63,216 bases of DNA, filler included, from Pelomyxa schiedti (GCA_020536535.1; 15 parts of 15 records of this genome joined end to end with filler, not necessarily neighbours in it), one strand, 5' to 3'; counted from the first letter of the whole stretch, positions 4,733 to 45,278 are shown. Notes: a model not told the origin generated them from the letters alone. A program made the numbers and translations.

Positions 4733-7700
4733 TTATAGGCTCAAAAGATTGAGGTTGTAACGGGGAGATGAGGCGGCATCAAGGAATGACAGCAACGCAC
4801 GAGCAGCAGCAGGCACGTCACGCAGTGCCATGTTGCAATAAACAAGCCTCATCACTTCATTCACGGTAACTTGAAGTGAATTGGATGGAGACACTGATGG
4901 CACAACATCAACGCCGAGGCGCAGCCCGTTGCGCTGGAAGATGTCTGTCAAGGTCTGCCTGTGTTCCTTGAACAGCGACTGTCTCATGGCCGCGATCATG
5001 TCCTCACGTGCCTGTTGCGGGCATTGTTGTGTCTCCTGCCGTGTGGTCCCTGTAGATTGCGGCAGTGCTGATTGTGAGAGCGATGGCGCGGCCGGTGCCG
5101 CGGCTGTGACATCAGAGAATGACTTGGCCATGGCTGCTCCTTTGTTCTGTTCGGTGTTTTCAATGTGGGTCAGGAACTGAGTTATTACGAGGAGAGGGAG
5201 TGACAGAATCGCCCCGCAAGCGAGGAGGGCCTCGTGCGACGTGGGCCGTCGGCTGCAATCACGCTCAAGAAGCCACCCAACAAGCCCGGCGAGAACTGCA
5301 TCCAAATCGACGGCAGGTGGTGAGGATGATGATGTTGTGGTGCTGGATGCGGACGATGATAATGCGGCGGATGGCGGAGGAGTTTGATGGCTGCTGGTGT
5401 TGTTTTTGCGCCTGGGGATGACTGGAGGGAGTGTGGTGTCACGTATAAGGTTGATGGGGGTATCGTTTCCACGCGCGAAAGGGTGCCTCCCGGAAAAAGT
5501 CTCAAAGAGAACACAGCCAACAGCCCACACATCGTTTTTGAGAAGTGGGAATTTCATAAGTGCCTGTATCACTTCAGGTGACCTGTTGCACATGTTGCCA
5601 GGGAATGTTTCACCGTTGGGCAAAACCAGGGGTTTCCCATCCTGACAAAACACAGCGGTTCCGAGGTCACAGAGAGCCCAGATGTTTCCTTTGATGTGTG
5701 GCCTCTCCATCAGCAGGATATTGTCAGACTTGATGTCACAGTGGAACCACCCTCGTGTGTTGAGGTGGTCAACTGCACACAGCATGCAAAACGCAAGCTG
5801 AAGCACATCCCTCGTTGTGCCAAGCGGGTGTTGTGGTGGTTGTGAAGATATGCCATCCAGTTCGGATGGTGATCCCTGAGAATGAGTGATAGGTGTATTT
5901 TTGGGTATAGCACGGAGCGTTGAAAGGAGGGACTCCAGAGTGCACTTCCCGAGTTCCATTGTCATGAACGTTGTTCGTTGAAACACTGGGATCGCGGCCC
6001 GGTCGTTTGTGCACCCTGACACCCAATTTCGATCTTCGTCAACAATCGTGTATTTCATCCTCATGCTCTCTCCAATCAACGAGAGTGAAGTATGGCCGCG
6101 GAAGTGGTTGAAGACATTTGTGAAGCACCAGTGTGGGTGCATCACTGCGACCTCGTATTCCCTTTCGAATTCAGTCCTCAATTGGAGGGTCTTCATTCCT
6201 GCACTATAATTGAACATCATCTTCACAGCCACCTCTTTTGGTCCTTTGGTGGGACCGTGGTCATCAGTAACACATAGGCCTCTACGTTGGAACACAATTG
6301 GAACTCGGCACACGGTCCCAAATGAGCCATTGGCAATGAAGGTTGCCCTTGTCAGATCAAGATCGTTTAACTCCACCAGAGCCATCCTCCCTTTTTGGAA
6401 TCCACAGAGGACTGTCTCCAGGTTGCCACCAACCTCCAGTGCGTAGGCTTGTTGTGCAGCAACACTCTCTTCAGCGTTTGTATGTTCGCTTGTTGTCTTT
6501 TCTGAACGACTTTGCATCTCCTCAAATGTACTTCTTTGCTGACGTAAGGCATTTTCTTTTTCCACTTCTAGGGCACTTTTTTGTTGCTCAAGTGCGTGAT
6601 GCTTCTCAGTGTTAAGCAGAAGCTCTTGTTGCCTAAGAGCATTCAGCTTTTCAGTGCTGAGGGTACTGGCTTGTCTCTCCAAAGTATTCCGTTTTTCTAT
6701 GTTGAATGAATCTGCCTGCGCTAGGAGTGCACCTTCCTTTTCCTGGGAGAGTTCAACTTTTTGTGCTGCCAGAGCGTTCTGTCTTTCAGAGACCAGCATT
6801 CGTTTTTGTTCGTCCAGTACTTCACTGTGAAACTACATCATGTATGTGAATTGTATGGTTATGTTCCCTTTCAAGAATAACCTCTTTCATGAGAGTAACT
6901 AGCAGCACAACGTGCTGTGCGCAGGATTTCAATGAAACGGGAGATGCAGTGAGCGATTGGTGCAGATCAATAAGGCTACTAGCCGCTTTGGTGGGAATTG
7001 AATGTTTGTGGCTACAATCTAACACGGAGGGAATGAGCTCCACACATTGCCAGAGAGCAAGTCCATCTTGGAGGTAATGCTCAAGCCAATAATCATGGAG
7101 CAAAGGAGCAAACACAACTTCATCGCCATTTTCTGAGAAGTACTTGGCTCTAGGATGCATGATTGTTTGGTTAAGTGTGTGGGAAGAAGTTAACACACAT
7201 AATTTTACCCTCATCGGTACTTCCCCTGCCATTTACTGCTTTGCATAGGTCTGGGATCTGTTATGTGGTTTCAGCTGAGTTAATAAAATAATTGGTTTGG
7301 TTTGTTAACCAACTTGGTTGAGCCACACATTCCCATGTGCGAACTGCTGCAAGTTTACCAACACTGAACCAATAACTTTGTCAAGATCCTCAGATGGAAT
7401 CACCTTTTCTCCCTAAAACTGGTGAGAGATGCTCAAGGTCTTCAAAGGCTCTCAAAGGGAGACACACATAGTGGTTCCTTGCAAAGTCCATGAAGTACAC
7501 CCCGAAGAGAAGACTGCTATTCACCAAGAAGTGCGTTACCTAGTTTGTGGTTTGTGAGAAGAGACAATCGAAGGGAGGAGCAAGTCATAAAACATACAGC
7601 TTTGAGGTGCCAATCACACAAGTGGATGGATTGTTGTAACTCATTACAGAGATGCTCATAATCCCTTAGACATAGTTCCGTCTATTTTGTACACAAGTAA

Positions 7701-29877: not shown

Positions 29878-30058
29878 CGCATGATAAAGTGCGTGCCGTG
29901 CGCGAGTGAGTAATGATCGTGCGTGTTACATCGGACGTGTGGTCCCTCAGCGGGATCTTACGATTAAGCAAACGCCAACGCGAACAACAACACACACAGA
30001 CACACCCGGGTGGTCCGACGACGATCAACTTAAAATCACTGCCTTTGTCCGCTGCCAT
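29878..30058 (-). CDS. Ras-superfamily small GTPase, first exon fragment
   Basis: MAADKGSDFKLIVVGPPG is the start of a P-loop; it is followed by a probable intron and the contig end. Confidence 0.55.
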
Positions 30059-30589
30059 GTTGTTTGTTGTGTGAAAAACTATGTTTAAAAACCAATTTGT
30101 TTTTTCTGTGATCTGATCACAATCGATCCAACTAGTCAGGTTAGGGGCACTGTGATGCCTGTTCCACAGATTCATGAATAAACAAGCTCTCACTTGAGCA
30201 AAGACAATTTTCTCTTTTAAAACTACACGTGTTGAAACACACGTGTTGTGTGATTCAGTAGAATACATCATTTAAGTCCTGCAAGGAAGACCAGGGATCC
30301 CTATTGTGATTAGTGACATGCGTACTGACTGTGGGTAGTTTCTCTCTGTCCCTTGATTTTTTTGTTTGAAAAGGCTGTCCTTAGTCTTTCACAGTTTGAT
30401 GAACCACTGTGGGACACATTTCTGAAACTGACTTTCGGTGGACATGTGCATTCCGAGTTCCAGGGCACCAACCGTTGAATGTTTCAAGCAGCACCACAAG
30501 ACTTGACTGAGGTGTCAAGTTCGTCAGGAATTTTGATTTCTTCGACTTGAACGATCCAAATTGTAGTTCAACAACAGTCTCCAACAACC

Positions 30590-32239
30590 ATGGCGACAAC
30601 AACGACAAAGTCACGCAACGTGACCAGGGAGTGGTTCCGCGCCGCGCATCGCGGCGACACCGACACACTGCGGCGTCTGCTTGCCGGCGACCACGACCTA
30701 CTAAACTCTGTGAACGACGAACGACAACGAGTGGTGCGAATGCGTTTGCGCGATATTAATTCGTTTTGTGTGCACCCACACACGCAGACAGCGTTGCATG
30801 CAGCCACGTGGGGAGGGGAACCGCGGTGCGTTGAGTTCCTGTTGTCAATGAATATCGATGTCAATTCTCAGGTATTCCCTCATTTTTATGTACAAACTCA
30901 CAAACTTTACCTCTCACTTCACAGATTGTGTGTAATACCCATCTGATTATGTTTACATTCCCTTTCCTCTAAAAACGTAAATCTAGGGGAAGCCTGTATG
31001 TTACTGCCATAAACCTCCATCCTTCCAATTTATTTATTCATCAATTTCTTACTTGCTTCAATTTCTCTCCTTGCTTCAATACGTGCCCCGTTTAGGATGT
31101 GTGCCACTGCCCCCACCCTTTTTATTGCGTTTATTCATCAATTTCTCTCCTTCCTTCAATATGCGATGAATTCAGGGAGTGTGTAACTGCCCCCACCCTT
31201 TTTATTGCGTTTATTCATCAATTTCTGACTTGCTTCAATTTCTCTCCTTGCTTCAATGCGTGCCACATTTAGCTTGTGTGTAACTGTCCCCACCCTTTTT
31301 ATTGCATTTATTCATCAATTTCTGACTTGCTTCAATTTCTCTCCTTGCTTAAATATGTGATGAATTCAGGGAGTGTGTAACTGCCCCCACCCTTTTTATT
31401 GCGTTTATTCATCAATTTCTGACTTCCTTCAACTTCTATGTGACACGATATCATTTTTCTACCTCTATTGTTGGACAATTGTGCCTTTATTGGCCACCAG
31501 GGAGTAAGTAAACACTCCCTGCAACTTTTTGTTCTGACTTTTTCGGGATTTTCACTATTTTGCACTGCAGATTGTATCACTCACTCTTTGGTTCTCTCTT
31601 TACTTAACTCTTTTATTATCAGCAAGTATGCACAGTTTTATTGTTATTCTCTTCCTCTATCTTATCTTTTCTTGGGGCTTTCTCTCAAATGAAAGGGTGA
31701 TGTATGTGAATGTCCTGTTTTTCTTTCCTTTATTAATTTTCTCTCTCTCAGACCGCACTTCACCTTGCCTGCCAGAAGGGAAATGTTGAAATTGTGAAAC
31801 AACTTGTGGGTACTGGCACCACAAACATCAAGGTCCCCCCCCCCATGTTGATTTGTATATGTGTTGTAATTTTTTCCTGTTGGAAAAAAATAGAACACAG
31901 AGGGAAAAACACCTGTGGAGTACTCCCAGAATGATGAAATGCGGCAACTGTTCCAATCTGTGTGTTGCACAATTCCTGTTGCCACAACAACCAAAACAAA
32001 AACAAAAACAACAACAACACAGAAAGTCCCCACTCCCAAAACAGCACAACTGCATCCTCCACCGTCTGCAACTCCTCCCATGTCTCAACCACCCATCGTC
32101 ATCACCACCCTGGAACAGCTCCACAATCTCGTCGCCCATGATTTGTTATCTTCATTCCCATTGCCTCCTCCAAACAAACCATCATCATCCCCACCACCAC
32201 CACCATTGAAGACACCTCCTTCCACGGTTCTGTCCAAAG
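30590..32239 (+). CDS. Ankyrin-repeat protein with microexon cassette, paralogue A (3' part lost in the gap)
   Basis: Predicted exons: 30590-30733, 30788-30871, ten microexons within 30925-31701, 31752-31832, and 31894 to the gap. Two TALH ankyrin motifs plus GKTP. Confidence 0.8.
30996..31440 (+). repeat. Minisatellite of ~80-100-nt intron+codon units (paralogue A)
   Basis: Unit: GTGTGTAACTGCCCCCACCCTTTTTATTGC...AG followed by 3 nt. Confidence 0.9.
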
Positions 32240-32339
32240 NNNNNNNNNNNNNNNNNNNNNNNNNNNNNNNNNNNNNNNNNNNNNNNNNNNNNNNNNNNNN
32301 NNNNNNNNNNNNNNNNNNNNNNNNNNNNNNNNNNNNNNN

Positions 32340-32663
32340 CGCCTCCTCCACCACCACCTCCTCCTGCTCCTCGGGCATCGCCGTCGTGGCCCTCGCTGCC
32401 GCCGCGTAGCGGCTACTGCTGCTGCTGCTCGCACTCGCGGTCGCAGTCGTAGTAGTAGTACTCGTAGCGGGGGTGGTTGTTGTTGGTGGTGGTGTTGTTG
32501 CAGCGGGGGTGGGGGGCGGAGGTGGTGGTGGGGGTGGGGCGGAGAAGAGGAGTGCGAGGGAGACGGCGCTGAGGCACCGTGGCACGCTGCCCACAGCTGC
32601 AGCGGCGTCCACCGTGTTGTGGTCGTACTTGTCTTTGCGGGGAAGTGTTCCCAGGGACAGCAT
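32340..32663 (-). CDS. Hypothetical Pro/Thr/Ala-rich protein, N-terminal fragment
   Basis: GC-rich ORF from the ATG at 32663 running into the gap. Confidence 0.45.
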
Positions 32664-33048
32664 GGCTCGGGGCGGAAACCTTATTTTGCTCGATCTGGCA
32701 GAGCCCCAGTCGAAATTTGACGAACAATGACAAGGTGATGGTTACTTGTGCCGCAAGGTGTGGAATGAATTACTCTATAAAACCCCTCCCCCCTCTCCTT
32801 AGGGAAATTAATTTCTAGAAAACAAAGCTACCGTCTCCCTAGAAGGAGATGAAAGTTGTTTTCTTTTTTTAGAGTGTAGGATGAGGTGGAGATGTGAATT
32901 CCGAGTTCCAGGGCACCAACAGTTGAATGTTTCAAGCAACACCACAAGACTTGACGGAGTTGGCAAGTTCGTACAGAAATTTTGATTTCCTCGACTTGAA
33001 CGATCCAAATTGCAGCTATCTCCAGGGCAACAACAGTCTCCGACAACC

Positions 33049-36000
33049 ATGGCGACAACAACGACAAAGTCACGCAACGGGCCACGCGTGGGACCCAAGG
33101 AGTGGTTCCGCGCCGCGCATGGCGGCGACACCGACGCACTGCGGCGTCTGCTTGCCGGCGACCGCGACCTACTAAACTCTGTGAACGACGAACGACAACG
33201 AGTGGTGCGAATGCGTAACAACTCTTTTTTTTTTTTTTTCCCGCGCGATATTAATTCGTTTTGTGTGCACACACACACACACGCAGACAGCGTTGCATGC
33301 AGCCACGTGGGGAGGGAAACCGCGGTGCGTTGAGTTCCTGTTGTCAATGAATATCGATGTCAATTCTCAGGTATGCCCTCATTTTTATGTACAAACTCAC
33401 AAACTTTACCTCTCACTTCACAGATTGTGTGTAATACCCATCTGATTATGTTTACATTCCCTTTCCTCTAAAAACGTAAATCTAGGGGATGCCTGTATGT
33501 TACTGCCATAAACCTCCATCCTTCCAATTTGTTTATTCATTAATTTCTTACTTGCTTCAATTTCTCTCCTTGCTTCAATGCGTGCCCCGTTTAGCTTGTG
33601 TGTAACTGCCCCCACCCTTTTTATTGCGTTTATTCATCAATTTCTCTCCTTGCTTCAATGCGTGCCCCGTTAGTCTGTGTGTAACTGTCCCCACCCTTTT
33701 TATTGTGTTTATGCATCAATTTCTTACTTGCTTCAATTTCTCTCCTTGCTTCAATGCGTGCCCCGTTTAGCTTGTGTGTAACTGCCCCCACCCTTTTTAT
33801 TGCATTTATTCATCAATTTCTTACTTGCTTCAATTTCTCTCCTTGCTTCAATATGTGCCGCGTTTAGCCTGTGTGTAACTGTCCCCACCCTTTTTATTGC
33901 ATTTATTCAGCAATTTCTTACTTGCTTCAATTTCTATGTGTGCATTTATTCATCAATTTCTTACTTCTTTCAACTTCTATGTGACACTATATCATTTTTC
34001 TACCTCTATTGTTGGACAATTGTGCCTTTATTGGCCACCAGGGAGTAAGTAAACACTCCCTGCAACTTTTTGTTCTGACTTTTTCGGGATTTTCACTATT
34101 TTGCACTGCAGATTGTATCACTCACTCTTTGGTTCTCTCTTTACTTAACTCTTTTATTATCAGGAAGTATGCACAGTTTTATTGTTATTCTCTTCCTCTA
34201 TCTTATCTTTTCTTGGGCTTTCTCTCTCAAATGAAAGGGTGATGTATGTGAATGTCCTGTTTTTCTTTCCTTTATTAATTTTCTCTCTCTCAGACCGCAC
34301 TTCACCTTGCCTGCCGAAAGGGAAATGTTGAAATTGTGAAACAACTTGTGGGTACTGGCACCACAAACATCAAGGTGTTCCCCCCCCATGTTGATTTGTA
34401 TATGTGTTGTAATTTTTTCCTGTTGGAAAAAAATAGAACACCGAGGGAAAAACACCTGTGGAGTACTCCCAGAATGATGAAATGCGGCAACTGTTCCAAT
34501 CTGTGTGGAGCACAATTCCTGTTGCCACAACAACCAAAACAACAACACAGAAAGTCCCCACTCCCAAAACAGCACAACTGCATCCTCCAGCGTCTGCAAC
34601 TCCTCCCATGTCTCAACCACCCATCGCCATCACCACCCTGGAACAACTCCACAATCTCGTCGCCCATGATTTGTTATCTTCATTCCCATTGCCTCCTCCA
34701 AACAAACCATCATCATCCCCACCACCACCACCATTGAAGACACCTCCTTCCACGGTTCTGTCCAAAGCTGCTGAAGATGGCATCAACAACCTTGGGAAAC
34801 AAGGCACAACCGTGGAGGCATCGGTTCTCATGCTGGTCACTGACCAATTGTCACAAACCCTGTCAACCCTCCTTGACCAGCAGAAAGTTCACCAAGGCAA
34901 TGCAGAAAAGGTCGCCGTGCAAGTTGAAGTCACAGGGAACCAAGTGGAACAGGCACAGGCACAGGTGCAAGAACTGGAGCGCAAGCTCGCACAAGCAAGG
35001 CAACTGCTTGGTGCAACAACGCAGGCCAACACACTGGCAAAGAAGCAACTTGATGAGTCCAGAGAGCTCACTGCCACCATCACCCGGAACATCTCCATGG
35101 TGCACGAAAAGCAGGAGGCTCTTGAGCGCAAATTGGCCTCCGTGCGAAAGGTTCTGTCCTCTCTGAGCCAGAAAGCAAGCACGCGAAACCTGCTGCAGTT
35201 TAACGTTGAGGACATCGGCTGCTTGCTCTGTGACCTGGGTCTCCAGAAGCATGCTGACAAGTTCAGCTTGAACGAAGTCGATGGTGAAGTCTTTCTGGAA
35301 CTGAACAAGGCAGGACTGGAGGAGCTTGGGGTCACTCAGAGAGCTGAGCAGGACCTTCTATACCATACAAGGGCAATGATAACTCATTGCGGTGCAATTC
35401 GCGCACCATCGGCCTCTGACGCGGGGGGCACAGACGCTGCTGCATCGTGGGACGTGAACGAAGTTGCAAGCTGGTTGGAATCCCAAGGAATACCTCCCCA
35501 AGCCATCACGTGGTTCCGCGAGATGGGAATAACAGGAATCTCGCTGCTTTACATGGAGGCGCAAGAAATAAGCAGTGTTCCAGGTCTCCCATTCGGGCCC
35601 CGGCACAAGCTCCTGAAGAGAATTGGAGAGCTCAAGTCCGCAGTTTACACTCCAAGAAATCCCCGAGCACCTTCATCCTCCGGTTTGTGCTTATCTTGTT
35701 GAACCATAACCACTTTCAACTGACCAAAACAACCAAGGACCTGGTCACACAGCAGCCGCACCATCGAGCATCCCTTTGGCTGTTCCGGCACCACTTGAAT
35801 TCCTCTGCCCAATCACGTGTGACTTGATGAACACTCCCGTTGTTGCTGCCGATGGGTGTGTTTCGCGAACGGGTTTACAATTCCTGCGTCTCTAACACTC
35901 AACTCGTAGATACTGTTATGAGAAGACCGCGATTGAGGAGTGGCTGAGGAAGCACAACACATCGCCGATGACCAACGCTGCTCTTTCCAGCAAAGCGTTG

Positions 36001-36063
36001 GTGGCCTGTCACACCCTCCGCAGTGTTATTCTCGACTGGAAGAAAGCCAACAACATCCCATAA
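33049..36063 (+). CDS. Ankyrin - coiled coil - SAM - SAM - U-box E3 ubiquitin ligase with microexon cassette, paralogue B
   Basis: Predicted exons: 33049-33204, 33287-33370, ten microexons within 33424-34243, 34294-34374, 34437-35682, ~35738-35855, ~35910-36063. SAM motifs: FSLNEVDGEVFLEL..LEELGV and WDVNEVASWLES..GITGISLL. U-box: EFLCPITCDLMNTPVVAADGYCYEKTAIEEWL..SPMTN. Confidence 0.88.
33495..33985 (+). repeat. Minisatellite of intron+codon units (paralogue B)
   Basis: Same unit as 30996-31440, with different 3-nt spacers. Confidence 0.9.
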
Positions 36064-36150
36064 ACCAACCCAAACATCCCATGCCCCCAGAATAACTGGG
36101 GGCCAAATAATCCAATTTCATGTTAGAGAAAGTGCCTTGTTGTTGGCTTA

Positions 36151-36900
36151 CACCGGGGGGCGAGTCAAGTGAGAAAAACAGAATTTTTTAGTGAGCAAGG
36201 CAGGGTGAAGCGGCCCGATTTTGCCGGGATTTGTTGATGTTTTGTGCCGCGGGGCGGTTGGCGCGGCGCCGCGGCGGGGCAGCGCGGCGTGTGTGTTCGT
36301 TGAATCGGGTCTCGCCGCGGCTGCGCGGCCTTGACATAAATGGCATGTTTGGGGTTGCGGAGACTGTGCGGTGACTTGCCTCTTTGTTTATCTCCACACC
36401 ATCAAAAAAATCGCTGCTACGAGGGGAGACCATGCCGCCCTGGGGTGAAGAGGAACAAGCGGTACCCGCCTTGTGTCTTCCATCACGTCGTGCCATCTAA
36501 TATTAATTGTTTTATTTCTGAATCAATTAAATTAATTTATATATATATTAAATATTTATATTTTATTTATTAATTAAGCATTTATTATTAATTTAATTAA
36601 AAGTAATTTTTTACGCATTTACGCCTTGTAATAAGGTAATAAGGCCTACAGCATTGCCGCACCCCTTTAATGTATTTCCGAGCCTTCACTGGTATGTGGC
36701 TTCTTGTTTCTTTGTTTTCTTTTTCCCATAGCACTGGGACACTGGTATGCTTTTTTTTTTTTTTTTTTTTTTTACACTTAGGTGGTCAACTTGCCTGCCG
36801 CTGCTGACATGACAACCACCAACGTACATCCTTCTCCTTTTTTGTCATTGCTGAACAGTTGTAGGTACCGGACTGACCAACCCCAACTTCCCTAACCCAC
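36151..36900 (+). mobile_element. Putative DNA transposon: shared terminus plus internal region
   Basis: TA|CACCGGGG terminus matches 11519 and 27043. The right boundary is uncertain. Confidence 0.5.
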
Positions 36901-37106
36901 TCTCCCGCTTTTCCGCTTTCCAACTACCACACTTTACTGTGACGGGTGCACAACCAGGCCCAAATTTCCCTTCTTACTCTTTCACTCTCATGTGTACCCA
37001 CAACGCCCACTTCTCTCCAAAATGTGGATTTACAACGTGGCATGTGAGTATACTGACAGGGAGTGACAGATGTGTTCGTACTGAAGCAAGATAAAGAGGA
37101 AACAAA

Positions 37107-37240
37107 GTATTTTAGTTGATCTGGTGAAGGTGTGGTTACAGTGTGCATCGCTCAAAAGCCCAGGTTCTTCCCATGAATTCCAGGTATCCAGTGGACCCAC
37201 AGCACAGCATCACGTGTCATTGAATTCCCAGAAGTTGTCG
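37107..37240 (-). repeat. Short dispersed repeat with A-rich 3' end, 5'-truncated copy
   Basis: Matches 42989-43135. Confidence 0.75.
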
Positions 37241-38430
37241 GAAGAGAGCGCAAACAAGAGGGAGGGGTGTTAGTGCCGAGGTGAAGTGGGTGGAGGCGGA
37301 AGTAAAGCCTGAACATTGTTCAACCACGTGCAGACATGATGTGAGCGGGGCACTGGTCACTGTGGAGCACATCTTCCACCACCTGGCTGCCTCCCTCTCG
37401 TCCTTGTATGATCCTTCAATCCTGTTGTTGTTGTTGTGCTGACCAGCTTTCTTCCCATACACCTGTGCAATCTTCAGGATCACATTGAATTTGTCCTCAA
37501 CTTGGGTTGGTTGTCCTGGCTGGCAAACAGTGCGAGGTGGAACAGCCTCAGTGCTCCTTTGTGTCCCTCCTCACTCCGGCTCCTTCCCAGTGCATCAACC
37601 CCAATGTTCCAAAGCTTCCTGGAGATTGTAAACACTGCGCACTTTGCAGTACACGTCTGCGAGGTGCATGCTGGCATCGAAGCAGCCCTGTGCTTCGGCC
37701 AACTTGAGAAGCCTCACAGCCTCGATGGGCTTGTCATGTGCAACAATGGCAGCAAGGTTCATTTGTGCTTCAGCATCTCCTTTCGCGGCAGCAAACCTCA
37801 TCAGTCTCAGGCCCTCAGCTTTGTTCATTGGAGCTTCTGCTTGTCCCCTTCACCGAGATACATCATTCCAAGCTCCCTCTGAGCGGGGCAGTAACCAAGT
37901 GAGGCCGCTTTCTTGACGTTGTTGAACCCACCAACGGCTGTCAGTGCTCGTGGATCGCCACCTTGTGCTGCCATTCCCACGTGGAACTGGCTTCTGTCTC
38001 TATCAGTGAACTCGAACAAGACATTCTTGCAGAAGGAGTACATTGGGTAGCCTGTGTCCAGCACAAAGCCCAAGAAGAAGTGGCAGAATGACCTCACTTT
38101 CTCAGGATATCTTTTGTCCCCACATGATGAACCAAGGAATGGACCATCCATTCCTGCGACGTGGAATTGCACGTCGCGGCGCAGTGGAGCAACTCGTCCC
38201 ACAAGTACATCTCGGGCCGCCGACTGCGAGCAAAAAGCTTCGGCGCCGATCGGAACAGAAACCCCAGCATCACGTGGGCAAATGCGCGCGCGTCGGGCGT
38301 GCTTGGCGTCGGCTGCCAAACTCCGCAGCAGATCGCAGCACCTCTGAAATTCACTTTCCACGTACAAGCGCAGGCACTCACTCGCGATCTCGCTCGTCGT
38401 GTCGTTTTTTCCACGCGACGCGGCATCGTG
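37241..38430 (-). pseudogene. SEL1-like repeat protein, frameshifted paralogue
   Basis: Aligns with 38558-39874 (GDPRALTAVGGF, KAASLG, AAKGDAEAQ, EAARWWK) but is split over several frames. Confidence 0.75.
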
Positions 38431-38557
38431 TTTACTCGGCCGAAAGAAAAGTTTAGCAGTAAAAAAAAAGTGATCACTATGACGAAAAAGGAAAAAAAAT
38501 TCACTTGGTAAAGTAAGACTCTGCTGCTCACCACCTCTTATTGTTCCACAGGCTTAT

Positions 38558-39874
38558 TCAATGGCTGAGTAGCACAGTTTTGGAAGGCTTGAGGTGGTGG
38601 ATGACCAGTTTACTGACTTGCTCAGTGTCTCGGAAAAAGCAAAAATTCAGCACAATCCGAGAGGGGCACTTGTCAGAGTTGAGCATCAGCTTCCACCACC
38701 TTGCAGCCTCCCTCGCGTCCTTGTACCCATCAGGGGCCCCCCTCCCTTCCTCGTACAGCTTTGCAATGTCGGCCACCAGGGTGAACTTGTACTCGATTGG
38801 ACTGTTCTGGAGGGCCGCCCATGCCAGGTGGTACAGCCTCATTCCCTCCTTTGTGTCCCTCTTCAAGCCAGAAACTCCAAACCAGGTCAGCCTTGCCAGT
38901 GTGCAAAAGGCTGTGGCCCACTCTGCAGGGTCACTGCTCTCGCGGCCTTCCTTCCACTTGTTGAACACTGGCTCTGCCATTTTCAGGAGGCGAATTCCCT
39001 CAGGGAGGTTGTGGACACATTCAGGGCCCGAGATGTACAGTCCTGCCAGTCCAATCTCTGCATCAACGTATCCTTGTGCTGCTGCCAGCTTGAAAAGCTT
39101 CACAGCCTCGACAGGGTTTTGGTTTTGGATGTATATCTTTGCAAGAAATGTTTGTGCCATTGCATCACCTTTCTCAACCGCAATCCTAAGCAGCTTCATT
39201 CCCTCCGTTGCATTCAATGGCACCTTGGGGCCTCCTGGGTACTCTGCCCCGTGGAGGTACATCATTCCAAGGTTCCTCTGAGCAGTGCAGAAACCAAGTG
39301 AGGCCGCCTTCTTGACGTTCTGGAACCCACCAACGGCTGTGAGTGCCCTTGGGTCGCCACTCTGTGCAGATACTTCTGCGTGAAAAGAGCTCTGTTCCTC
39401 GCTTGTGAATGGGAAGTCACCATAATCTTTGCCCAGAACCATGGCCAAGAAGTAGTGACAAAATGCCTTCACCTTTTTCCCACCACAACTGTTGTTGTCC
39501 CCATCACAAACAGAATGCACCAAATTTACCATCCATTTTTGGGCCCTTGAGTCACACCCCGCAGCACGCCGATGGAACTCGTCCCACAAGTACGTCTCGA
39601 ACGGCTGACTGTGCGCGAAAAGCTTCGGGTCGGCCTGGAACAAGAACGCCAGCATTACGTTGCCGAAAGCCCGCGAGTCGTCGTCCTCGTCCGCCAACGA
39701 GCACGCGAGGCGGTGGAACCGACGCAGATCGCTTTCAGCGAACAGCCGCAGGCACTCCTTCGCTGCCGCGCTCGTCGCCGCGTCGTCGTCGGGGTTGCTC
39801 TGAGCCGACACCGCCTTCACGTCGTTGTGCTTCTTTGTTTTACGCGTGCAGTCACGTCCTGCCTTTTTGCCCAT
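38558..39874 (-). CDS. SEL1-like repeat protein (438 aa)
   Basis: SEL1 consensus matches: AQRNLGMMYLHG, AVEKGDAMAQTFLAKIY, AAAQGYVDAEIGLAGLY, LYEEGRG..D.REAARWW. Confidence 0.85.
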   Translation of the reverse strand: MGKKAGRDCTRKTKKHNDVKAVSAQSNPDDDAATSAAAKECLRLFAESDLRRFHRLACSLADEDDDSRAFGNVMLAFLFQADPKLFAHSQPFETYLWDEFHRRAAGCDSRAQKWMVNLVHSVCDGDNNSCGGKKVKAFCHYFLAMVLGKDYGDFPFTSEEQSSFHAEVSAQSGDPRALTAVGGFQNVKKAASLGFCTAQRNLGMMYLHGAEYPGGPKVPLNATEGMKLLRIAVEKGDAMAQTFLAKIYIQNQNPVEAVKLFKLAAAQGYVDAEIGLAGLYISGPECVHNLPEGIRLLKMAEPVFNKWKEGRESSDPAEWATAFCTLARLTWFGVSGLKRDTKEGMRLYHLAWAALQNSPIEYKFTLVADIAKLYEEGRGAPDGYKDAREAARWWKLMLNSDKCPSRIVLNFCFFRDTEQVSKLVIHHLKPSKTVLLSH

Positions 39875-40017
39875 TTGCTCCCTTCCACCTTTGTCGAGAA
39901 AAAGAATGACGACCCGGTACTACAACCATTGAGTCCCGTGGGGAATGCTGATGTAAGCATTCCTGGAAGCAAAGTTTGATTCAGAACAAAAACAACGAAA
40001 GCTGCGATAGACGAACC

Positions 40018-42893
40018 ATGTTGTCTCCGCCCAAACCCGCAGCCAAACAAATTATTGTGTTGGGTGCTGAATGCAATGCAGGGCAGGTAACATATTTCCA
40101 AGTGTTTCTACAAAGAATATTTGCCGGCGTTGCGCCAATTTATGAGTTCGTTGATGTGATGTTGCAGAATAAACTAGTGAAAGCACTTGTGGGACTGCAC
40201 CAGGGACCAGATGAACCAGTTCAGATCCCATGTGCGAGAGTTGGGAAGGATGCCCGCATTTGGAGTATGCAGTGGATGTCAAATGGTTTTTTTTTTAAGT
40301 TTAGTTTTTTTTTTTGCTAATGGGCATTTCAAGACGAACTTCTGGCTGTCAACTTGAATGGTTGAGTGTCTATTTGTTTGGTTTCTGATAACCCTCAAAC
40401 AAAATGCACAACAGATGTTTCCGAAATGTGGGTCTGGGATTGGACAAGGTACTTTGTTTTCTCCGATGCAGTTGTCCTGTGCTTCCCACTTCACACAACC
40501 TACGGAGATTATTCCCTCAACCCTATTTCATTCCAGGTACCACTATTCCCTCCCCACAATCTTGTTTTTTCTTTAAACAGTTGTACATATGATCTGTTGT
40601 GCACCTTTGTTTATGTTTTCTGCAGTATTTTCCAGAAGTTTGGAACAAGAAACGGTTCACACCTATTTTTCTTGTTGGGATAAACGATCACCCAGAAAAG
40701 CCAGCATCTATTTCACGTAAACGGTGCATCAAGGTATTATTATCAAGCCACAGCAGCTTGTTTGCTTTCCTTATTGTCATTACATCTCACAACAACCCGC
40801 AGGAAGCAAAGAGAATTGGAGCTGTTTACTATCTTGAATTCAATACAACAACCCTTGGAGGAGTTAATGTACTCTTCAATGTACTGTTGCAAGCTCTCAC
40901 CAGAAAAATTGAAATCCATGGAGACAGATGGGAGCCTTTGGTTGGGATATCAGGCTACCCCGCTGGCTTTGACCTGTAACTATCTCAGTGATATCCTAAA
41001 AAAGGGTTCCCTGGATGATTCAAAAAAAAGGTGTGGCCATGTTTGCACTGTTTATTCAGATCGCCTCTACCTGTTCGGCGGTCGCAACAGAGGGGGACTT
41101 CGCTTCGAGGGGTATTATTTAGACCTCTCAGCATCTCAGGATTCCAACTGGGAACTAATCCTTGGCAAAGACGCACAGTTTCCTGAGTTCCCGGCATACT
41201 GCACTTCACAGAACGGCCAACTCGTTTATTTCTTTGGTGGAACAGATGTGTTACCCACTGAAGATTCACCGAGGATCTTTGATGCTGCCAAATCCCGAAT
41301 GGAAGCCATACAAGTGGCAAATCCATCAGAATCCCCACCACGAAGTTACGGTGGAACTCTCGTGATGTATGTGTGACTCCCCTCAAACTTGAAATACCGT
41401 AATCGGGAATTCCCAGTCATGACAACAAACTGTACTTGTTTGGAGGCTCTGTTTCAGGATGGGCCACTGATGGTTTTTATGGTACCTCCCCAATTCCCAT
41501 TCTGTACTTCCACTGACCTCACATCACCACAACAGAGTTCAATCTGGCAACGAAGATTTGGAAGGAATTGCCCCCACAAGGACGTTTTCCACAAGTGCGA
41601 TACCATCACAGTTCATATTGCAAGTATCTTACTCTCATCACTTTCAAGAATTGACTGATTCAATTTATTCCCCAGAAACGGAGTGATGGTGATTCTCTGT
41701 GGACTTGGAAACAATCGTGACAAATACAACGATGTTTGGAGTGTAGACCTTTCCAAGGCATCGGCCGAAGGAAAAGCAACGTGGAATCTGATTCCGTGCC
41801 GTGGAACACCACCAACACCCCAAAGAGGCCACGCTGGGTGTTTGTTGAACAATGACTCCTTCATGTTCGTTGGCTCTTCAAACGCGAACCCACAATGTGA
41901 GTTTTTTCAGTATGTTTTCCCTGCCAACATATTTTGGTTGGCTACAACAACACACAGTTTTGATACAAACACATTCACTTGGAAGGAGATGGAAATGCAA
42001 ATGTCTCCATTTTCGAGAGAGGTCAGCCCTTTGTTTTCTTCTGCGTTTTTGACATTCTCACAGTTCTNNNNNNNNNNNNNNNNNNNNNNNNNNNNNNNNN
42101 NNNNNNNNNNNNNNNNNNNNNNNNNNNNNNNNNNNNNNNNNNNNNNNNNNNNNNNNNNNNNNNNNNNACAACACACAGTTTTGATACAAACACATTCACT
42201 TGGAAGGAGATGGAAATGCAAATGTCTCCATTTTCGAGAGAGGTCAGCCCTTTGTTTTCTTCTGCGTTTTTGACATTCTCACAGTTCTTTGGGATCACTG
42301 CGTGGAGAAATCACATCATCATCACCAGTGGTATCATTCGTCGGGAAAGACCCGCGCTTTTGAGTGATGGGTACATTTCAGTCACGCCCTCACTCTTTCC
42401 AGAGACTCCGGCACAAGAGCAAGTTCCCAACACCATTACCTCTGATGGCACTTTTTCCGCATTTCAGGTTGCTCCACCAGACTGCTGGATGCAAGTGATT
42501 GCATTCTTGGATGTGGATGACATTTGCCGGCTGGGGCGAGTAATTTCCCCCTTCTTGGATTCCATTTAACGCCACCCGTTCAGGTATCAACGGAATTATA
42601 CCGCATCTGCTCCAGTGACGAAGTGTGGAAGAAATTTCTTCCTGTTGGTTTGCACAGGGGAACCGGCCTGAAGCCATTTTGTATGCACCCACCCCATAAA
42701 CACCACCCCATTTCATTTTGAGCTGATACCTCCTTACACAGGCGTTCCCGTGTGGAAGAATCCATTACCGCTGGTTCCCACAATCGTTCCGCAATACAGT
42801 GTATGCCGGTACCATCCCGAATTGATCATGTCCACTTACCATCACCACCTTCGACAGTGTCCAAGAATCCCGCGGTTCCCCGATTTCGAATGA
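40018..42893 (+). CDS. Degenerate Rho-like GTPase - Kelch repeats - F-box protein, multi-exon
   Basis: Rho-like: DAVVLCF, TPIFLVG, EAKRIGAVYYLE. Kelch: GHVCTV..LYLFGG, VYFFGG, KLYLFGG, RYHHS, YNDVW, RGHA. F-box-like: PPDCWMQVIAFLDVDDICRLGRVS..Y..C..DEVW. Confidence 0.75.
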
Positions 42894-42988
42894 TGACAAA
42901 TAGCAATACATGTCAGACATGCCCTTGGAGCAAAGTCAATTTGTTTTCAATTTGTAGTTAAGTGCTTCAAATCCCTTCACGAAAGAAA

Positions 42989-43179
42989 TATTTATTTATT
43001 TTAGTTGATCTGGTGAAGGTGTGGTTACAGTGTGCATCGCTTAAAAGCCCAGGTTCTTCCCATGAATTCCAAGTATCCAGTGGACGCACAGCACAGCACA
43101 ACATCACGTGTAACTGAATTCCCAGAAGTTGTCCGACTTCTGTGGGTCGCTCAGGGCCGACACTGTGATTCACTTTCAC
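42989..43179 (-). repeat. Short dispersed repeat ending in (TAAA)n
   Basis: The minus strand ends CCAGATCAACTAAAATAAATAAATA. Homologous to 13467 and 37107. Confidence 0.75.
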
Positions 43180-43388
43180 GACCCCGATCTCGTTGTCAAT
43201 TTGTAGTGACAACAGCCAGTGCTGTTCCAGCTTCTTTTTTTTAGACATCTAACAAAAGATTGGGTTTCAGGTCGAGGCTGTTACCATCCACTTGGTACTA
43301 TGTTAGTTTTCCTGAGGGATTGTTTTGATTGCAGTGTCTCCCAGATCAGCCGTTGGTGATTTCCAGTAAAAAACCTGTCGTTTGGGAG

Positions 43389-45278
43389 ATGTGGGGACCC
43401 GAGCATGCCGGCAAACGAATTATCGTGTTGGGTGACCAATGCCACGGAAGGGTACTTGTTTTCTATCCTTCTTTTTGGTTTTTTACTCTTGCTATTGTTT
43501 GTATGGCAATAATAATTCAAGAACTTCGTAAATAATATTACTGACCTCGAGGTTCGGGCTATAATTGATGCTTTGTGATGTTGCAGAATCAACTGGTGAG
43601 GGAACTTGTTGGACTGAACCAGGGACCAGATGAACCAGTTCAGAGCCTATGTGAGTATGGCACTTCCGCGTCAGCGAGTGGCAAGTGCAGCTGGAGCCTG
43701 CACTGGATGTCAAAGGGTAGGGTAGTTGTTTTTTGCCTTGCTTTTATTTTTTTTTTAATCTGCATATAGGTGAACTTGTGGCAGTCACATTGAATGGTTT
43801 GTGAGTGTTCGATTTCTGAGAAGGCACCACACTAACTCCCACCACACACACATACCCAAAGATGTATCCAACATGTGGGGTGATTGGTCGAGACCCAGGT
43901 CGTACACTGCGCATTCTGATGCAGCTGTTCTGTGCTTCTCACTTCATTCACCTTCTTCGATCGACTCTATTTCATCCCGGGTTCGATCCCCAATCTGTCC
44001 ATACCCTTCTTTTTCACATTTCTGCATTTTGTGCAGTGGTTCCCAGAAGTCTGGAACAACAAACGGTTCACACCTGTTTTTCTTGTTGGCATCAACGAAC
44101 ACCCAGAAAAGCCAACATTGATTCCGCGTCAACAGTGCATCCAGGTACAACACAACTTTTTTGATATACCACACAACAAATGACACGCACATAGGAAGCA
44201 AAGCGAATTGGCGCTGTTTACTATCTCGAATACAATGCAGCAAGTTCTGCTGGAGCCAATGTCTTATGCAACGTGCTCGTGCAAACTCTTGGGAGAAAAA
44301 TTGAGATACAAGGAGACAGATGGGAACCTTTTTCCGGGATCGGTGGCTACACTGGCGGCTTCGGCGTGTGTGTTTTCAACTCTCAATTATACTTTGTTAT
44401 CCTAACTTTTACAGGTATGGTCATGTTTGCACTGTTTGTGCAAATCGTCTCTATCTATTTGGTGGTCGTAGTAGAGACGGAGTTCACCCAAAGGGCTACT
44501 ATTTGGAACTTCCAGTATCACAGGATTCCGGATGGAAATGGAAATCAGTCGAGGGCAAAGCTCAGTTTCCTCCGTTTCCAGCATACTGCACTGCAATGAA
44601 CGGCCAACTCGTTTATTTCTTTGGTGGGTCATCTAATCTCCCTGATGAAAGTGCACTTATGGTCTTTGACACAACCAAGTCCCGTTTGGAAACCATTGTG
44701 CCAGCAAATTCAGCAAAAAAATCCCCACCAGAGAGTTACGGTGGAACCCTTGTGATGTATGCATGATCCCCCATTGGAATACAGCCTCTAATTGAAATTC
44801 TACAGCCACGAAAACAAACTGTATTTATTTGGTGGATCTGTTTCAGGTGTGGCCACTGGCGGTTTTTATGGTACCTCCCCAATTTCCATGATTTTCCCTG
44901 AGAGTACTTCAACTGACATTATGTCGCGGCAACAGAGTTCAATCTGATCAAGAAGGTTTGGAAGGAGCTGACCGCCAAAGGACGTGCTCCCCCGGAGCGA
45001 TTCCATCACAGCTCATATTGCAAGTATCATATAACCATCACTTTCGAGAATTGACTGATTCAATTCCAGAAACGGAGTGATGGTGATTCTCTGTGGACTT
45101 GGAAACAATCGTGACAAATACAACGACGTTTGGACTGTCGACCTCGCCAAGGCATCAGCCGAAGGAAAAGCAACGTGGAATCTGATTCCGTGCCGTGGAA
45201 CACCACCAACACCCCAAAGAGGCCACGCTGGGTGTTTGTTGAACAATGACTCCTTCATGTTCGTTGGCTCTTCAAACG
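43389..45278 (+). CDS. Tandem paralogue of the Rho-like/Kelch gene, 3'-partial
   Basis: Same exon order and motifs (RIIVLGDQ, DAAVLCFS, TPVFLVG, YGHVCTV..LYLFGG); cut by contig end. Confidence 0.75.

Follow-up and report, generated by a model that had tools for sequence, protein, structure and literature searches.

The window analyzed here comprises 63,216 nt, filler included, in which 15 parts of 15 records of the Pelomyxa schiedti (Archamoebae) assembly GCA_020536535.1 are joined end to end. At positions 29878–45278 it holds a complete contig of 15,401 nt, on which two tandem paralogues, Pelo_4154 (gene A) and Pelo_4155 (gene B), are found on the plus strand; the translated large exon of gene B is 100% identical to GenBank Pelo_4155. 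Gene A starts with an ATG at 30590 and is interrupted by a gap of 100 N at 32240. Its exon 1 (30590–30733) was assigned from the sequence, from its match to P0006 and from the homologous B intron, which is spliced in RNA. Exon 2 (30788–30871) encodes ankyrin (ANK) repeat 1 and ends with ..VNSQ in phase 0, its B homologue matching positions 4–30 of the 33 positions of the Pfam Ank profile. Exon 3 (31752–31832) encodes ANK repeat 2, starts with T-A-L-H, also in phase 0, and has a B homologue with a Pfam match. Exon 4 (31894–32239), read from the sequence, is ended by the scaffold gap. Gene B (33049–36063) is made of exon 1 (33049–33204; RNA joint 33204>33287 and P0001), exon 2 with ANK repeat 1 (33287–33370; RNA contigs and Pfam), exon 3 with ANK repeat 2 (34294–34374), exon 4 with a third ANK-like turn, a coiled coil and two SAM domains (34437–35682; Pfam SAM_1 and SAM_2), exon 5 with the start of the U-box (35738–35855) and exon 6 with the remainder of the U-box and the stop codon (35910–36063), exons 3 to 6 each being supported by RNA joints and Pfam. 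Four ordinary introns of gene B, of 82, 62, 55 and 54 nt and all of the GT..AG type, are spliced in RNA contigs; these joints establish the exon map and demonstrate that the gene has short introns. Pfam searches of B, run exon by exon, assigned Ank to exons 2 and 3, SAM_1/SAM_2 to the part of exon 4 that follows the coiled coil, and U-box to exons 5 and 6. Judged by these domains, the protein resembles an E3 ubiquitin ligase that carries a small N-terminal ANK module.

The source of the assembly should be considered when referring to the results below. It was obtained from amplified single cells and scaffolded with RNA reads, and its genes were annotated with a pipeline of Augustus, PASA and EVM (PMC8887013); the array unit counts given here may thus be inexact. 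The same paper reports 7.43 introns per gene, with GT-AG borders in nearly all, and is silent on microexons (PMC8887013). True adjacency of genes A and B hinges on the scaffold join at the 32240 N gap, right after which a GC-rich low-complexity stretch (32340–32640, with CCT, GCT and GGT runs) shows no clear tie to either gene. Another 100-N gap, at 42068–42167, carries an exact 121-nt duplicate on both flanks (41947–42067 and 42168–42288); contig ends that overlap were probably joined here in the RNA-based scaffolding, so that this gap is likely artificial and its exon duplicated. The remainder of the contig contains more tandem gene pairs, namely a minus-strand pair at 37300–39900, whose complete member has a Sel1 repeat, and two multi-exon Kelch-repeat genes, 74–97% alike, on the plus strand at 40020–45278, and tandem duplication seems to have acted locally over the whole 15.4 kb. 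Two copies of a 102-nt repeat, 97% identical to each other, are found at 37108–37209 and 42997–43098, directly downstream of gene B and of the first Kelch gene, which are unrelated; the repeat could be a common 3' element or a small dispersed repeat.

The feature under study lies between exons 2 and 3, where an interval of 880 nt in A (30872–31751) and of 923 nt in B (33371–34293) can be parsed in full, by regex scan, into 11 GT..AG introns and 10 microexons in each gene. The array introns measure 49–171 nt, and in either gene eight microexons are 3 nt long, a ninth has 9 nt and the last 6 nt. In A, the head of the array contains the ATT (Ile) microexon at 30925–30927, which is ATT in seven of eight aligned paralogues and ACT (Thr) in the eighth (locus L006), and whose identical B site is spliced in RNA. 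It is followed by the 9-nt exon at 30987–30995 (G-K-P), which is 9 nt long in all eight aligned paralogues, varies in its middle codon, is present in annotated P0006 and contains an internal AG at 30993 that might shorten it. The central microexons are GAT (31096–31098), GGA (31176–31178), CTT (31273–31275) and GGA (31370–31372), and the tail holds the conserved GGA (Gly, 31501–31503) and ATT (Ile, 31571–31573), then CAA (Gln, 31623–31625; GAA in B) and finally the 6-nt exon GGTGAT (G-D, 31696–31701), which was placed by scan, alignment and Pfam position and is invariant in all six tail-aligned paralogues. The initial annotation had listed these AG-NNN-GT sites together with the internal AG, and each was found exactly there. 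It had further described two alternating unit types in A, one in which the intron ends with GAATTCAG before GGA and one in which it ends with TTTAG before a variable codon, and a minisatellite built of the central introns. Both descriptions hold: in A, the GAT at 31096 follows ..TTTAG and the GGA at 31176 follows ..TTCAG, and TRF reports intron-plus-codon units with periods of 80 and 97 nt at 31058–31437, where matches to an HMM of the unit interior are also found. In B, the counterparts of the A sites are present from 33424 to 34243, with plus-strand microexons at 33424, 33486 (9 nt), 33595, 33674, 33771, 33868, 34042, 34112, 34164 and 34238 (6 nt), and the minisatellite occupies 33553–33935, again with a 97-nt (and 80-nt) period.

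If all microexons are used, the predicted loops are I-GKP-D-G-L-G-G-I-Q-GD for A and I-GMP-L-S-L-P-G-I-E-GD for B, which differ, as had been claimed, in 5 of 13 residues. In the A/B alignment, the microexons differ at 10 of 39 nt, as compared with 3 of 349 in the non-repeated introns; the large exons differ at 1 of 84 (exon 2), 2 of 81 (exon 3) and 6 of 324 positions (exon 4), i.e., by 1–2%, so that introns and large exons outside the repeats are indeed nearly identical between the two genes. It should be noted that part of the codon differences between A and B reflects swaps of whole unit types and not point changes.

To describe the arrays beyond this pair, we compared seven paralogue loci (L001–L007). 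Exon 4 and the annotated N-terminus, used as protein queries, retrieved at least ten family members, all of them P. schiedti proteins. When the protein collection was searched with the N-terminal 112 residues and exon 4, only GenBank models were retrieved and no transcript-derived fragments. The exon 2–exon 3 zone spans 1837 nt in L001, 1004 nt in L002, 1857 nt in L004 and 1862 nt in L005, in each case without any N, and together with A and B these loci follow a common plan: a head of Ile and then a 9-nt G-x-P exon, a centre of 4 to ~14 units per paralogue, and a tail of Gly, Ile (Thr in L001), Glu or Gln, and then the 6-nt G-D exon. Related arrays are also found in L003, L006, L007 and the second gene of L002. 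Between ANK1 and ANK2, 10 to ~20 microexons are counted per gene (up to 19 in paralogues other than A and B). The downstream part of L007 encodes ANK and a protein kinase (Pfam Pkinase), and the cassette is therefore common to ligase-type and kinase-type genes. The arrays include higher-order repeats, such as CCT-TTT-CCT-TTT in L005. This range of unit numbers, along with the higher-order repeats, agrees with the earlier proposal that the array grows and shrinks by whole units, for which crossover or slippage would be the mechanism. A degenerate unit was seen in L007 at 5680–5705, where neither the AG of the acceptor nor the GT of the donor is retained (..TTTGG-TAT-ATG..) and two introns are fused into one of 115 nt; this may be an example of microexon death.

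Across ~75 kb of family loci, the strict motif YAG-NNN-GTRYGY is almost confined to the arrays, and the AG-NNN-GT pattern within them is far beyond chance. Every site has its AG and GT in good sequence context, with a pyrimidine tract and YAG on the acceptor side. When the scan was anchored on strong donors, the nearest upstream AG was located at 3 nt in 77 cases, at 6 nt in five and at 9 nt in five, with none within 15 nt in the remaining five. All 87 AG-to-donor distances are therefore 3, 6 or 9 and none is a non-multiple of three, as the initial annotation had expected of functional spacers. A directly juxtaposed AG and GT, i.e., a zero-length exon of the recursive-splice type, never occurs, as at least 3 nt always separate the two. 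For conservation, we aligned the non-repeated head of the array in eight paralogues and its tail in six. The splice-dinucleotide columns are invariant in 28 of 28 cases, as opposed to 111 of 476 (23%) other intron columns (Fisher p 2.5e-17), while 18 of the 27 microexon columns are invariant, a share similar to that in the flanking large exons (28 of 51). Between repeated units, AG and GT show a pairwise diversity of 0. The suggestion that the splice sites are under constraint is thus strengthened by the paralogue alignment. In addition, a TTCTRAC motif resembling a branch site is conserved in a tail intron.

The codons of the repeated units behave differently from the remainder of the unit. 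In L005, which contains 13 near-identical units of 101 nt, codon position 1 has a diversity of 0.59 and codon position 2 one of 0.72, as compared with a mean of 0.069 elsewhere; the corresponding values for the units of L004 are 0.76 and 0.64 versus 0.113. Codon positions 1 and 2 thus exceed the other unit sites ~5–10-fold, the excess at the codon being 5- to 7-fold per site, and in some unit pairs only 1 of 104 non-codon sites differs but 2 of 3 codon sites do. These substitution densities support the earlier view that the codons are diversifying. A few non-codon sites are, however, equally diverse, these being two-allele markers of unit subtypes, so that the codon excess is strong yet not unique. 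As read from the sequences, the codon divergence could stem from selection or from a local mutational bias. The array triplets are NNT or GGA with rare exceptions, the third position being T in 62, A in 12 and C in three. When the array codons were checked for competing splice sites, no stop codons and no NGT, AGN or GTN triplets were found among them. A repertoire free of stops and of competing sites is in keeping with selection on a codon that is translated and has to be spliced cleanly. As an alternative source of conservation, we considered an intronic RNA gene and rejected it: the units have no Rfam match at E≤1 and show no greater folding stability than shuffled sequences (z 0.25 to 2.0), and the conservation is hence not that of such a gene.

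Transcript data were taken from three single-cell RNA-seq runs (X1–X3) and one DNA-type run (X4) of a single study, and were analyzed as contigs. The most informative is an X1 contig of 352 nt, in which intron 1 is gone, position 33370 is joined to 33486 via exactly ATT, and the sequence then continues unspliced for ~77 nt into the following intron. No such joint was found in the DNA run X4. As ATT is the exact predicted microexon (33424–33426, plus strand), and as no shifted donor or acceptor can yield it, the 3-nt exon is used. The donor used is the first GT of the GTGTGT motif, and the molecule is a partly spliced intermediate from which the 5' introns were removed first. Of the ten B microexons, this first one is the one seen spliced in RNA, and the other nine are predicted, all of this being at the level of contigs. 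An X2 contig connects exon 2 of B to exon 3, with 84 of its letters left without a match; no mix of removed and retained B introns adds up to 84. Unspliced array sequence of several paralogues is plentiful in the RNA libraries as well, and may represent pre-mRNA or DNA contamination. A shorter form of the B array was observed as well, in which 33744 is joined to 33988 with 10 other letters between them, both in a DNA contig (X4, depth ~180) and in an RNA-library contig (X1). It lacks 243 nt of the B array, i.e., ~2.5 units; an allele, an additional paralogue or a variant in copy number could account for it.

The position of the array in the protein can be deduced from the Pfam Ank profile, of which exon 2 reaches position 30 of 33 and exon 3 begins at position 4, so that the array has to supply about five residues of the hairpin between the repeats. 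Its last exon, of 6 nt, provides the consensus Gly-x before the T-A-L-H of ANK repeat 2. In B, the 9- and 6-nt exons alone give the canonical loop length, and all microexons together give a loop longer by 8 residues; with all predicted microexons, the loops of L001, L004 and L005 are ~20 residues above canonical. L007 is without the 9-nt exon, and the 3-nt exons are required there for a normal loop length. The hairpin and loop region of ANK repeats is part of their known binding surface (PMC4986451). An AlphaFold model of the annotated N-terminus, computed from the single sequence, places the site loosely between two helices with a mean pLDDT of 50, and the placement given here accordingly rests on the Pfam profile positions.

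The existing gene models of the family need to be corrected by hand in this region. The GenBank model of B includes only the 9- and 6-nt exons (GMP-GD) and has the canonical 33-residue ANK spacing, and that of A includes only the 9-nt exon (GKP); A and B are identical in sequence at the 6-nt exon, yet their annotated loops differ. All ten family models that we inspected are wrong or broken at the array, with genes split and introns translated; for members other than A and B, one gene is annotated as an N-terminal stub plus a separate C-terminal gene, or has its intron repeats translated. For L001–L007, the affected models are Pelo_6818/6819, 6823/6824, 4541, 16958, 16377, 16513 and 4505; the N-terminus of Pelo_6824, for example, consists of translated intron repeats. 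Given this conflict between the A and B models and the reading of several others into introns, the annotation is weak evidence for or against microexon use. Truncated GenBank models of the form ..NSQ-I-V.. were considered as transcript support and rejected, as they use the first acceptor and then run on into the next intron. In one model, an odd donor has no effect other than to lengthen the ORF, and the truncated models may be ab initio predictions.

Taken as a whole, we consider it probable that these are real spliceosomal microexons of one codon each, plus one of three codons and one of two, in the ANK1–ANK2 loop of a multi-copy P. schiedti family, with the first demonstrated in RNA and the use of the others predicted. 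One could instead suppose that the mature mRNA uses few or no 3-nt exons, the zone being one to three long introns that carry a minisatellite of decoy splice sites and the ATT contig a minor or dead-end intermediate. Such a situation would agree with the exact canonical ANK loop length of the annotated B model, with the incomplete splicing of the ATT contig itself and with the abundance of unspliced array sequence in the RNA runs. It leaves unexplained, however, why AG-to-GT spacing is always a multiple of three, why the tail microexons show coding-like conservation and why diversity peaks on the two bases after AG; it would leave the L007 loop too short, and the annotation on which it leans is contradictory at an identical 6-nt exon and enters introns in several models. 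Intron size speaks to the same point, as the other RNA-supported introns of B measure 54–82 nt, among which array introns of 49–171 nt are normal in size, whereas a single intron of 880–923 nt would be an outlier. We therefore regard the few-exon alternative as unlikely, though deserving of more weight than the two that follow.

That each unit is a self-contained intron, and that the summed X4 DNA depth over the repeat is 20–100 times that of its flanks, could also be taken to mean that the units are an introner-like mobile element inserted repeatedly at one spot, with the variable triplets as insertion junctions. A unit-interior HMM built without the splice sites nonetheless gave 59 matches in the ~75-kb sample, 59 of 59 on the sense strand inside family arrays and none in ~20 neighbouring genes; moreover, the triplet before a unit is unlike the one after it, so that these are not target-site duplications, no terminal inverted repeats or structure were found, and the excess depth can be explained by at least ten paralogues with 4–14 units each. 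On this sample, such an origin of the units seems to us very improbable. Misassembly of repeats is a concern in any assembly built from amplified single-cell data with RNA-read scaffolding (PMC8887013), especially with N gaps and a duplicated gap flank nearby. The same architecture is, however, found with diverged sequence on seven other contigs, the arrays are free of N, and X4 DNA contigs independently cover the array tail, so that misassembly, which could affect the unit number only, is hardly credible as the source of the array.

In the reading that we prefer, that of genuine one-codon exons, the family proteins combine ANK, coiled coil, SAM and U-box, with a kinase in one related member, and each unit is one codon preceded by a full short intron, which has a donor such as GTGYGTAA, a branch site of the TTCTGAC/TTCTAAC type, a pyrimidine tract and a terminal YAG. 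With AG and GT only 3 nt apart, the factors bound to them would clash, and neighbouring introns could hardly be recognised simultaneously. Most likely, the introns would thus be removed one by one through intron definition, and the one partly spliced contig suggests that the order is probably 5' to 3'. As the microexon lengths are all multiples of three, the skipping or inclusion of any of them is neutral to the frame, and loop length may range upward from the canonical five residues, reaching 13 for A and B and ~25 for paralogues outside this pair. The length of the central array would change by tandem duplication, slippage or unequal exchange of the intron-plus-codon unit, which the variable unit number, the higher-order repeats of L005 and the B DNA form shorter by 243 nt all support. 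As bases 1 and 2 of the codon change much faster than the remainder of the unit, the sequence of the loop diversifies, either under selection or through a local mutational bias.

A search of the literature revealed no report of microexon arrays in Amoebozoa or Pelomyxa. The closest system is that of the NACHT-ANK ('nank') genes of Tuber melanosporum, whose 3-bp mini-exons are described as numbering in the dozens (Iotti et al. 2012, Fungal Biol 116:261, via PMC4986451, PMC3689799, PMC9815663 and PMC10197012). Going by these secondary accounts, the truffle genes share with the Pelomyxa genes the presence of many codon-sized exons within the ANK-repeat part of an expanded gene family. The accounts also read the mini-exons as diversifying a recognition domain by alternative splicing; for the Pelomyxa array, the corresponding RNA evidence consists of one partly spliced contig and one contig joining exon 2 to exon 3. 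Pelomyxa belongs, however, to Amoebozoa, a supergroup other than that of Fungi, and its proteins carry no NACHT, as the domains detected by Pfam are limited to Ank, SAM_1/SAM_2 and U-box, with Pkinase in L007. The amoeba case further details an intron-plus-codon minisatellite with hypervariable codons. It seems likely that the two are convergent. In the literature searched, these truffle genes are the sole precedent for diversifying a binding surface in this manner, and the device is very rare.

Other known systems resemble the arrays in single aspects. The micro-exon genes (MEGs) of Schistosoma contain runs of symmetric exons of 3–81 bp, in multiples of three, the skipping of which keeps the frame and varies the protein; most of their coding region consists of microexons, their introns reach 5 kb and their products are secreted (PMC10526429). 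In Pelomyxa, by contrast, only one loop is concerned (39 of ~1,900 coding nt in B), the introns measure 49–171 nt and the domains are of cytosolic type. Isolated 3-nt microexons of animals and plants use canonical splice sites and are often missed by annotation and aligners (PMC8632122, PMC8042270, PMC8831610), but they occur singly or in small clusters between long introns, whereas Pelomyxa presents tandem arrays of 10–19 separated by homologous short introns. In fungal NLR repeats, exchange keeps tandem units near-identical apart from a few hypervariable positions, which in ANK lie at the beta-hairpin/loop surface (PMC4986451); there the unit is a whole coding repeat of 33 residues, and here it is an intron with a single codon. 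Introns can also be gained by tandem duplication of a segment with splice signals, which creates new introns (PMC4974935), while in Pelomyxa whole introns are duplicated together with one codon. Finally, near-abutting introns removed stepwise recall recursive splicing, although recursive sites leave no exon and the Pelomyxa sites leave 3 nt.

A bolder possibility is that the array acts as a combinatorial generator, in which each one-codon exon is independently included or skipped, giving up to 2^n loop variants at the target-binding tip of the ANK domain for a gene with n microexons, to which rapid germline turnover of codons and unit number would add. This would furnish E3 ligases and kinases with a recognition repertoire that arose independently of the truffle NACHT-ANK genes. 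We put this forward tentatively and would at present sooner doubt it than assume it.

Chains of up to ~19 one-codon exons, with acceptor and donor 3 nt apart, test the limits of splice-site recognition and offer a natural system for ordered, intron-defined splicing. As all ten inspected family models are wrong at the array, similar arrays are likely to go unnoticed in other protist genomes. Should the truffle and amoeba arrays be convergent, the device may be a widely available path to diverse receptors in lineages other than animals and plants. For Pelomyxa itself, duplication of an intron together with one codon makes the loop evolvable codon by codon, and, if the combinatorial proposal were true, the recognition loops of its E3 ligases and kinases would vary, with prey, parasites or the many endosymbionts of the amoeba as conceivable targets.
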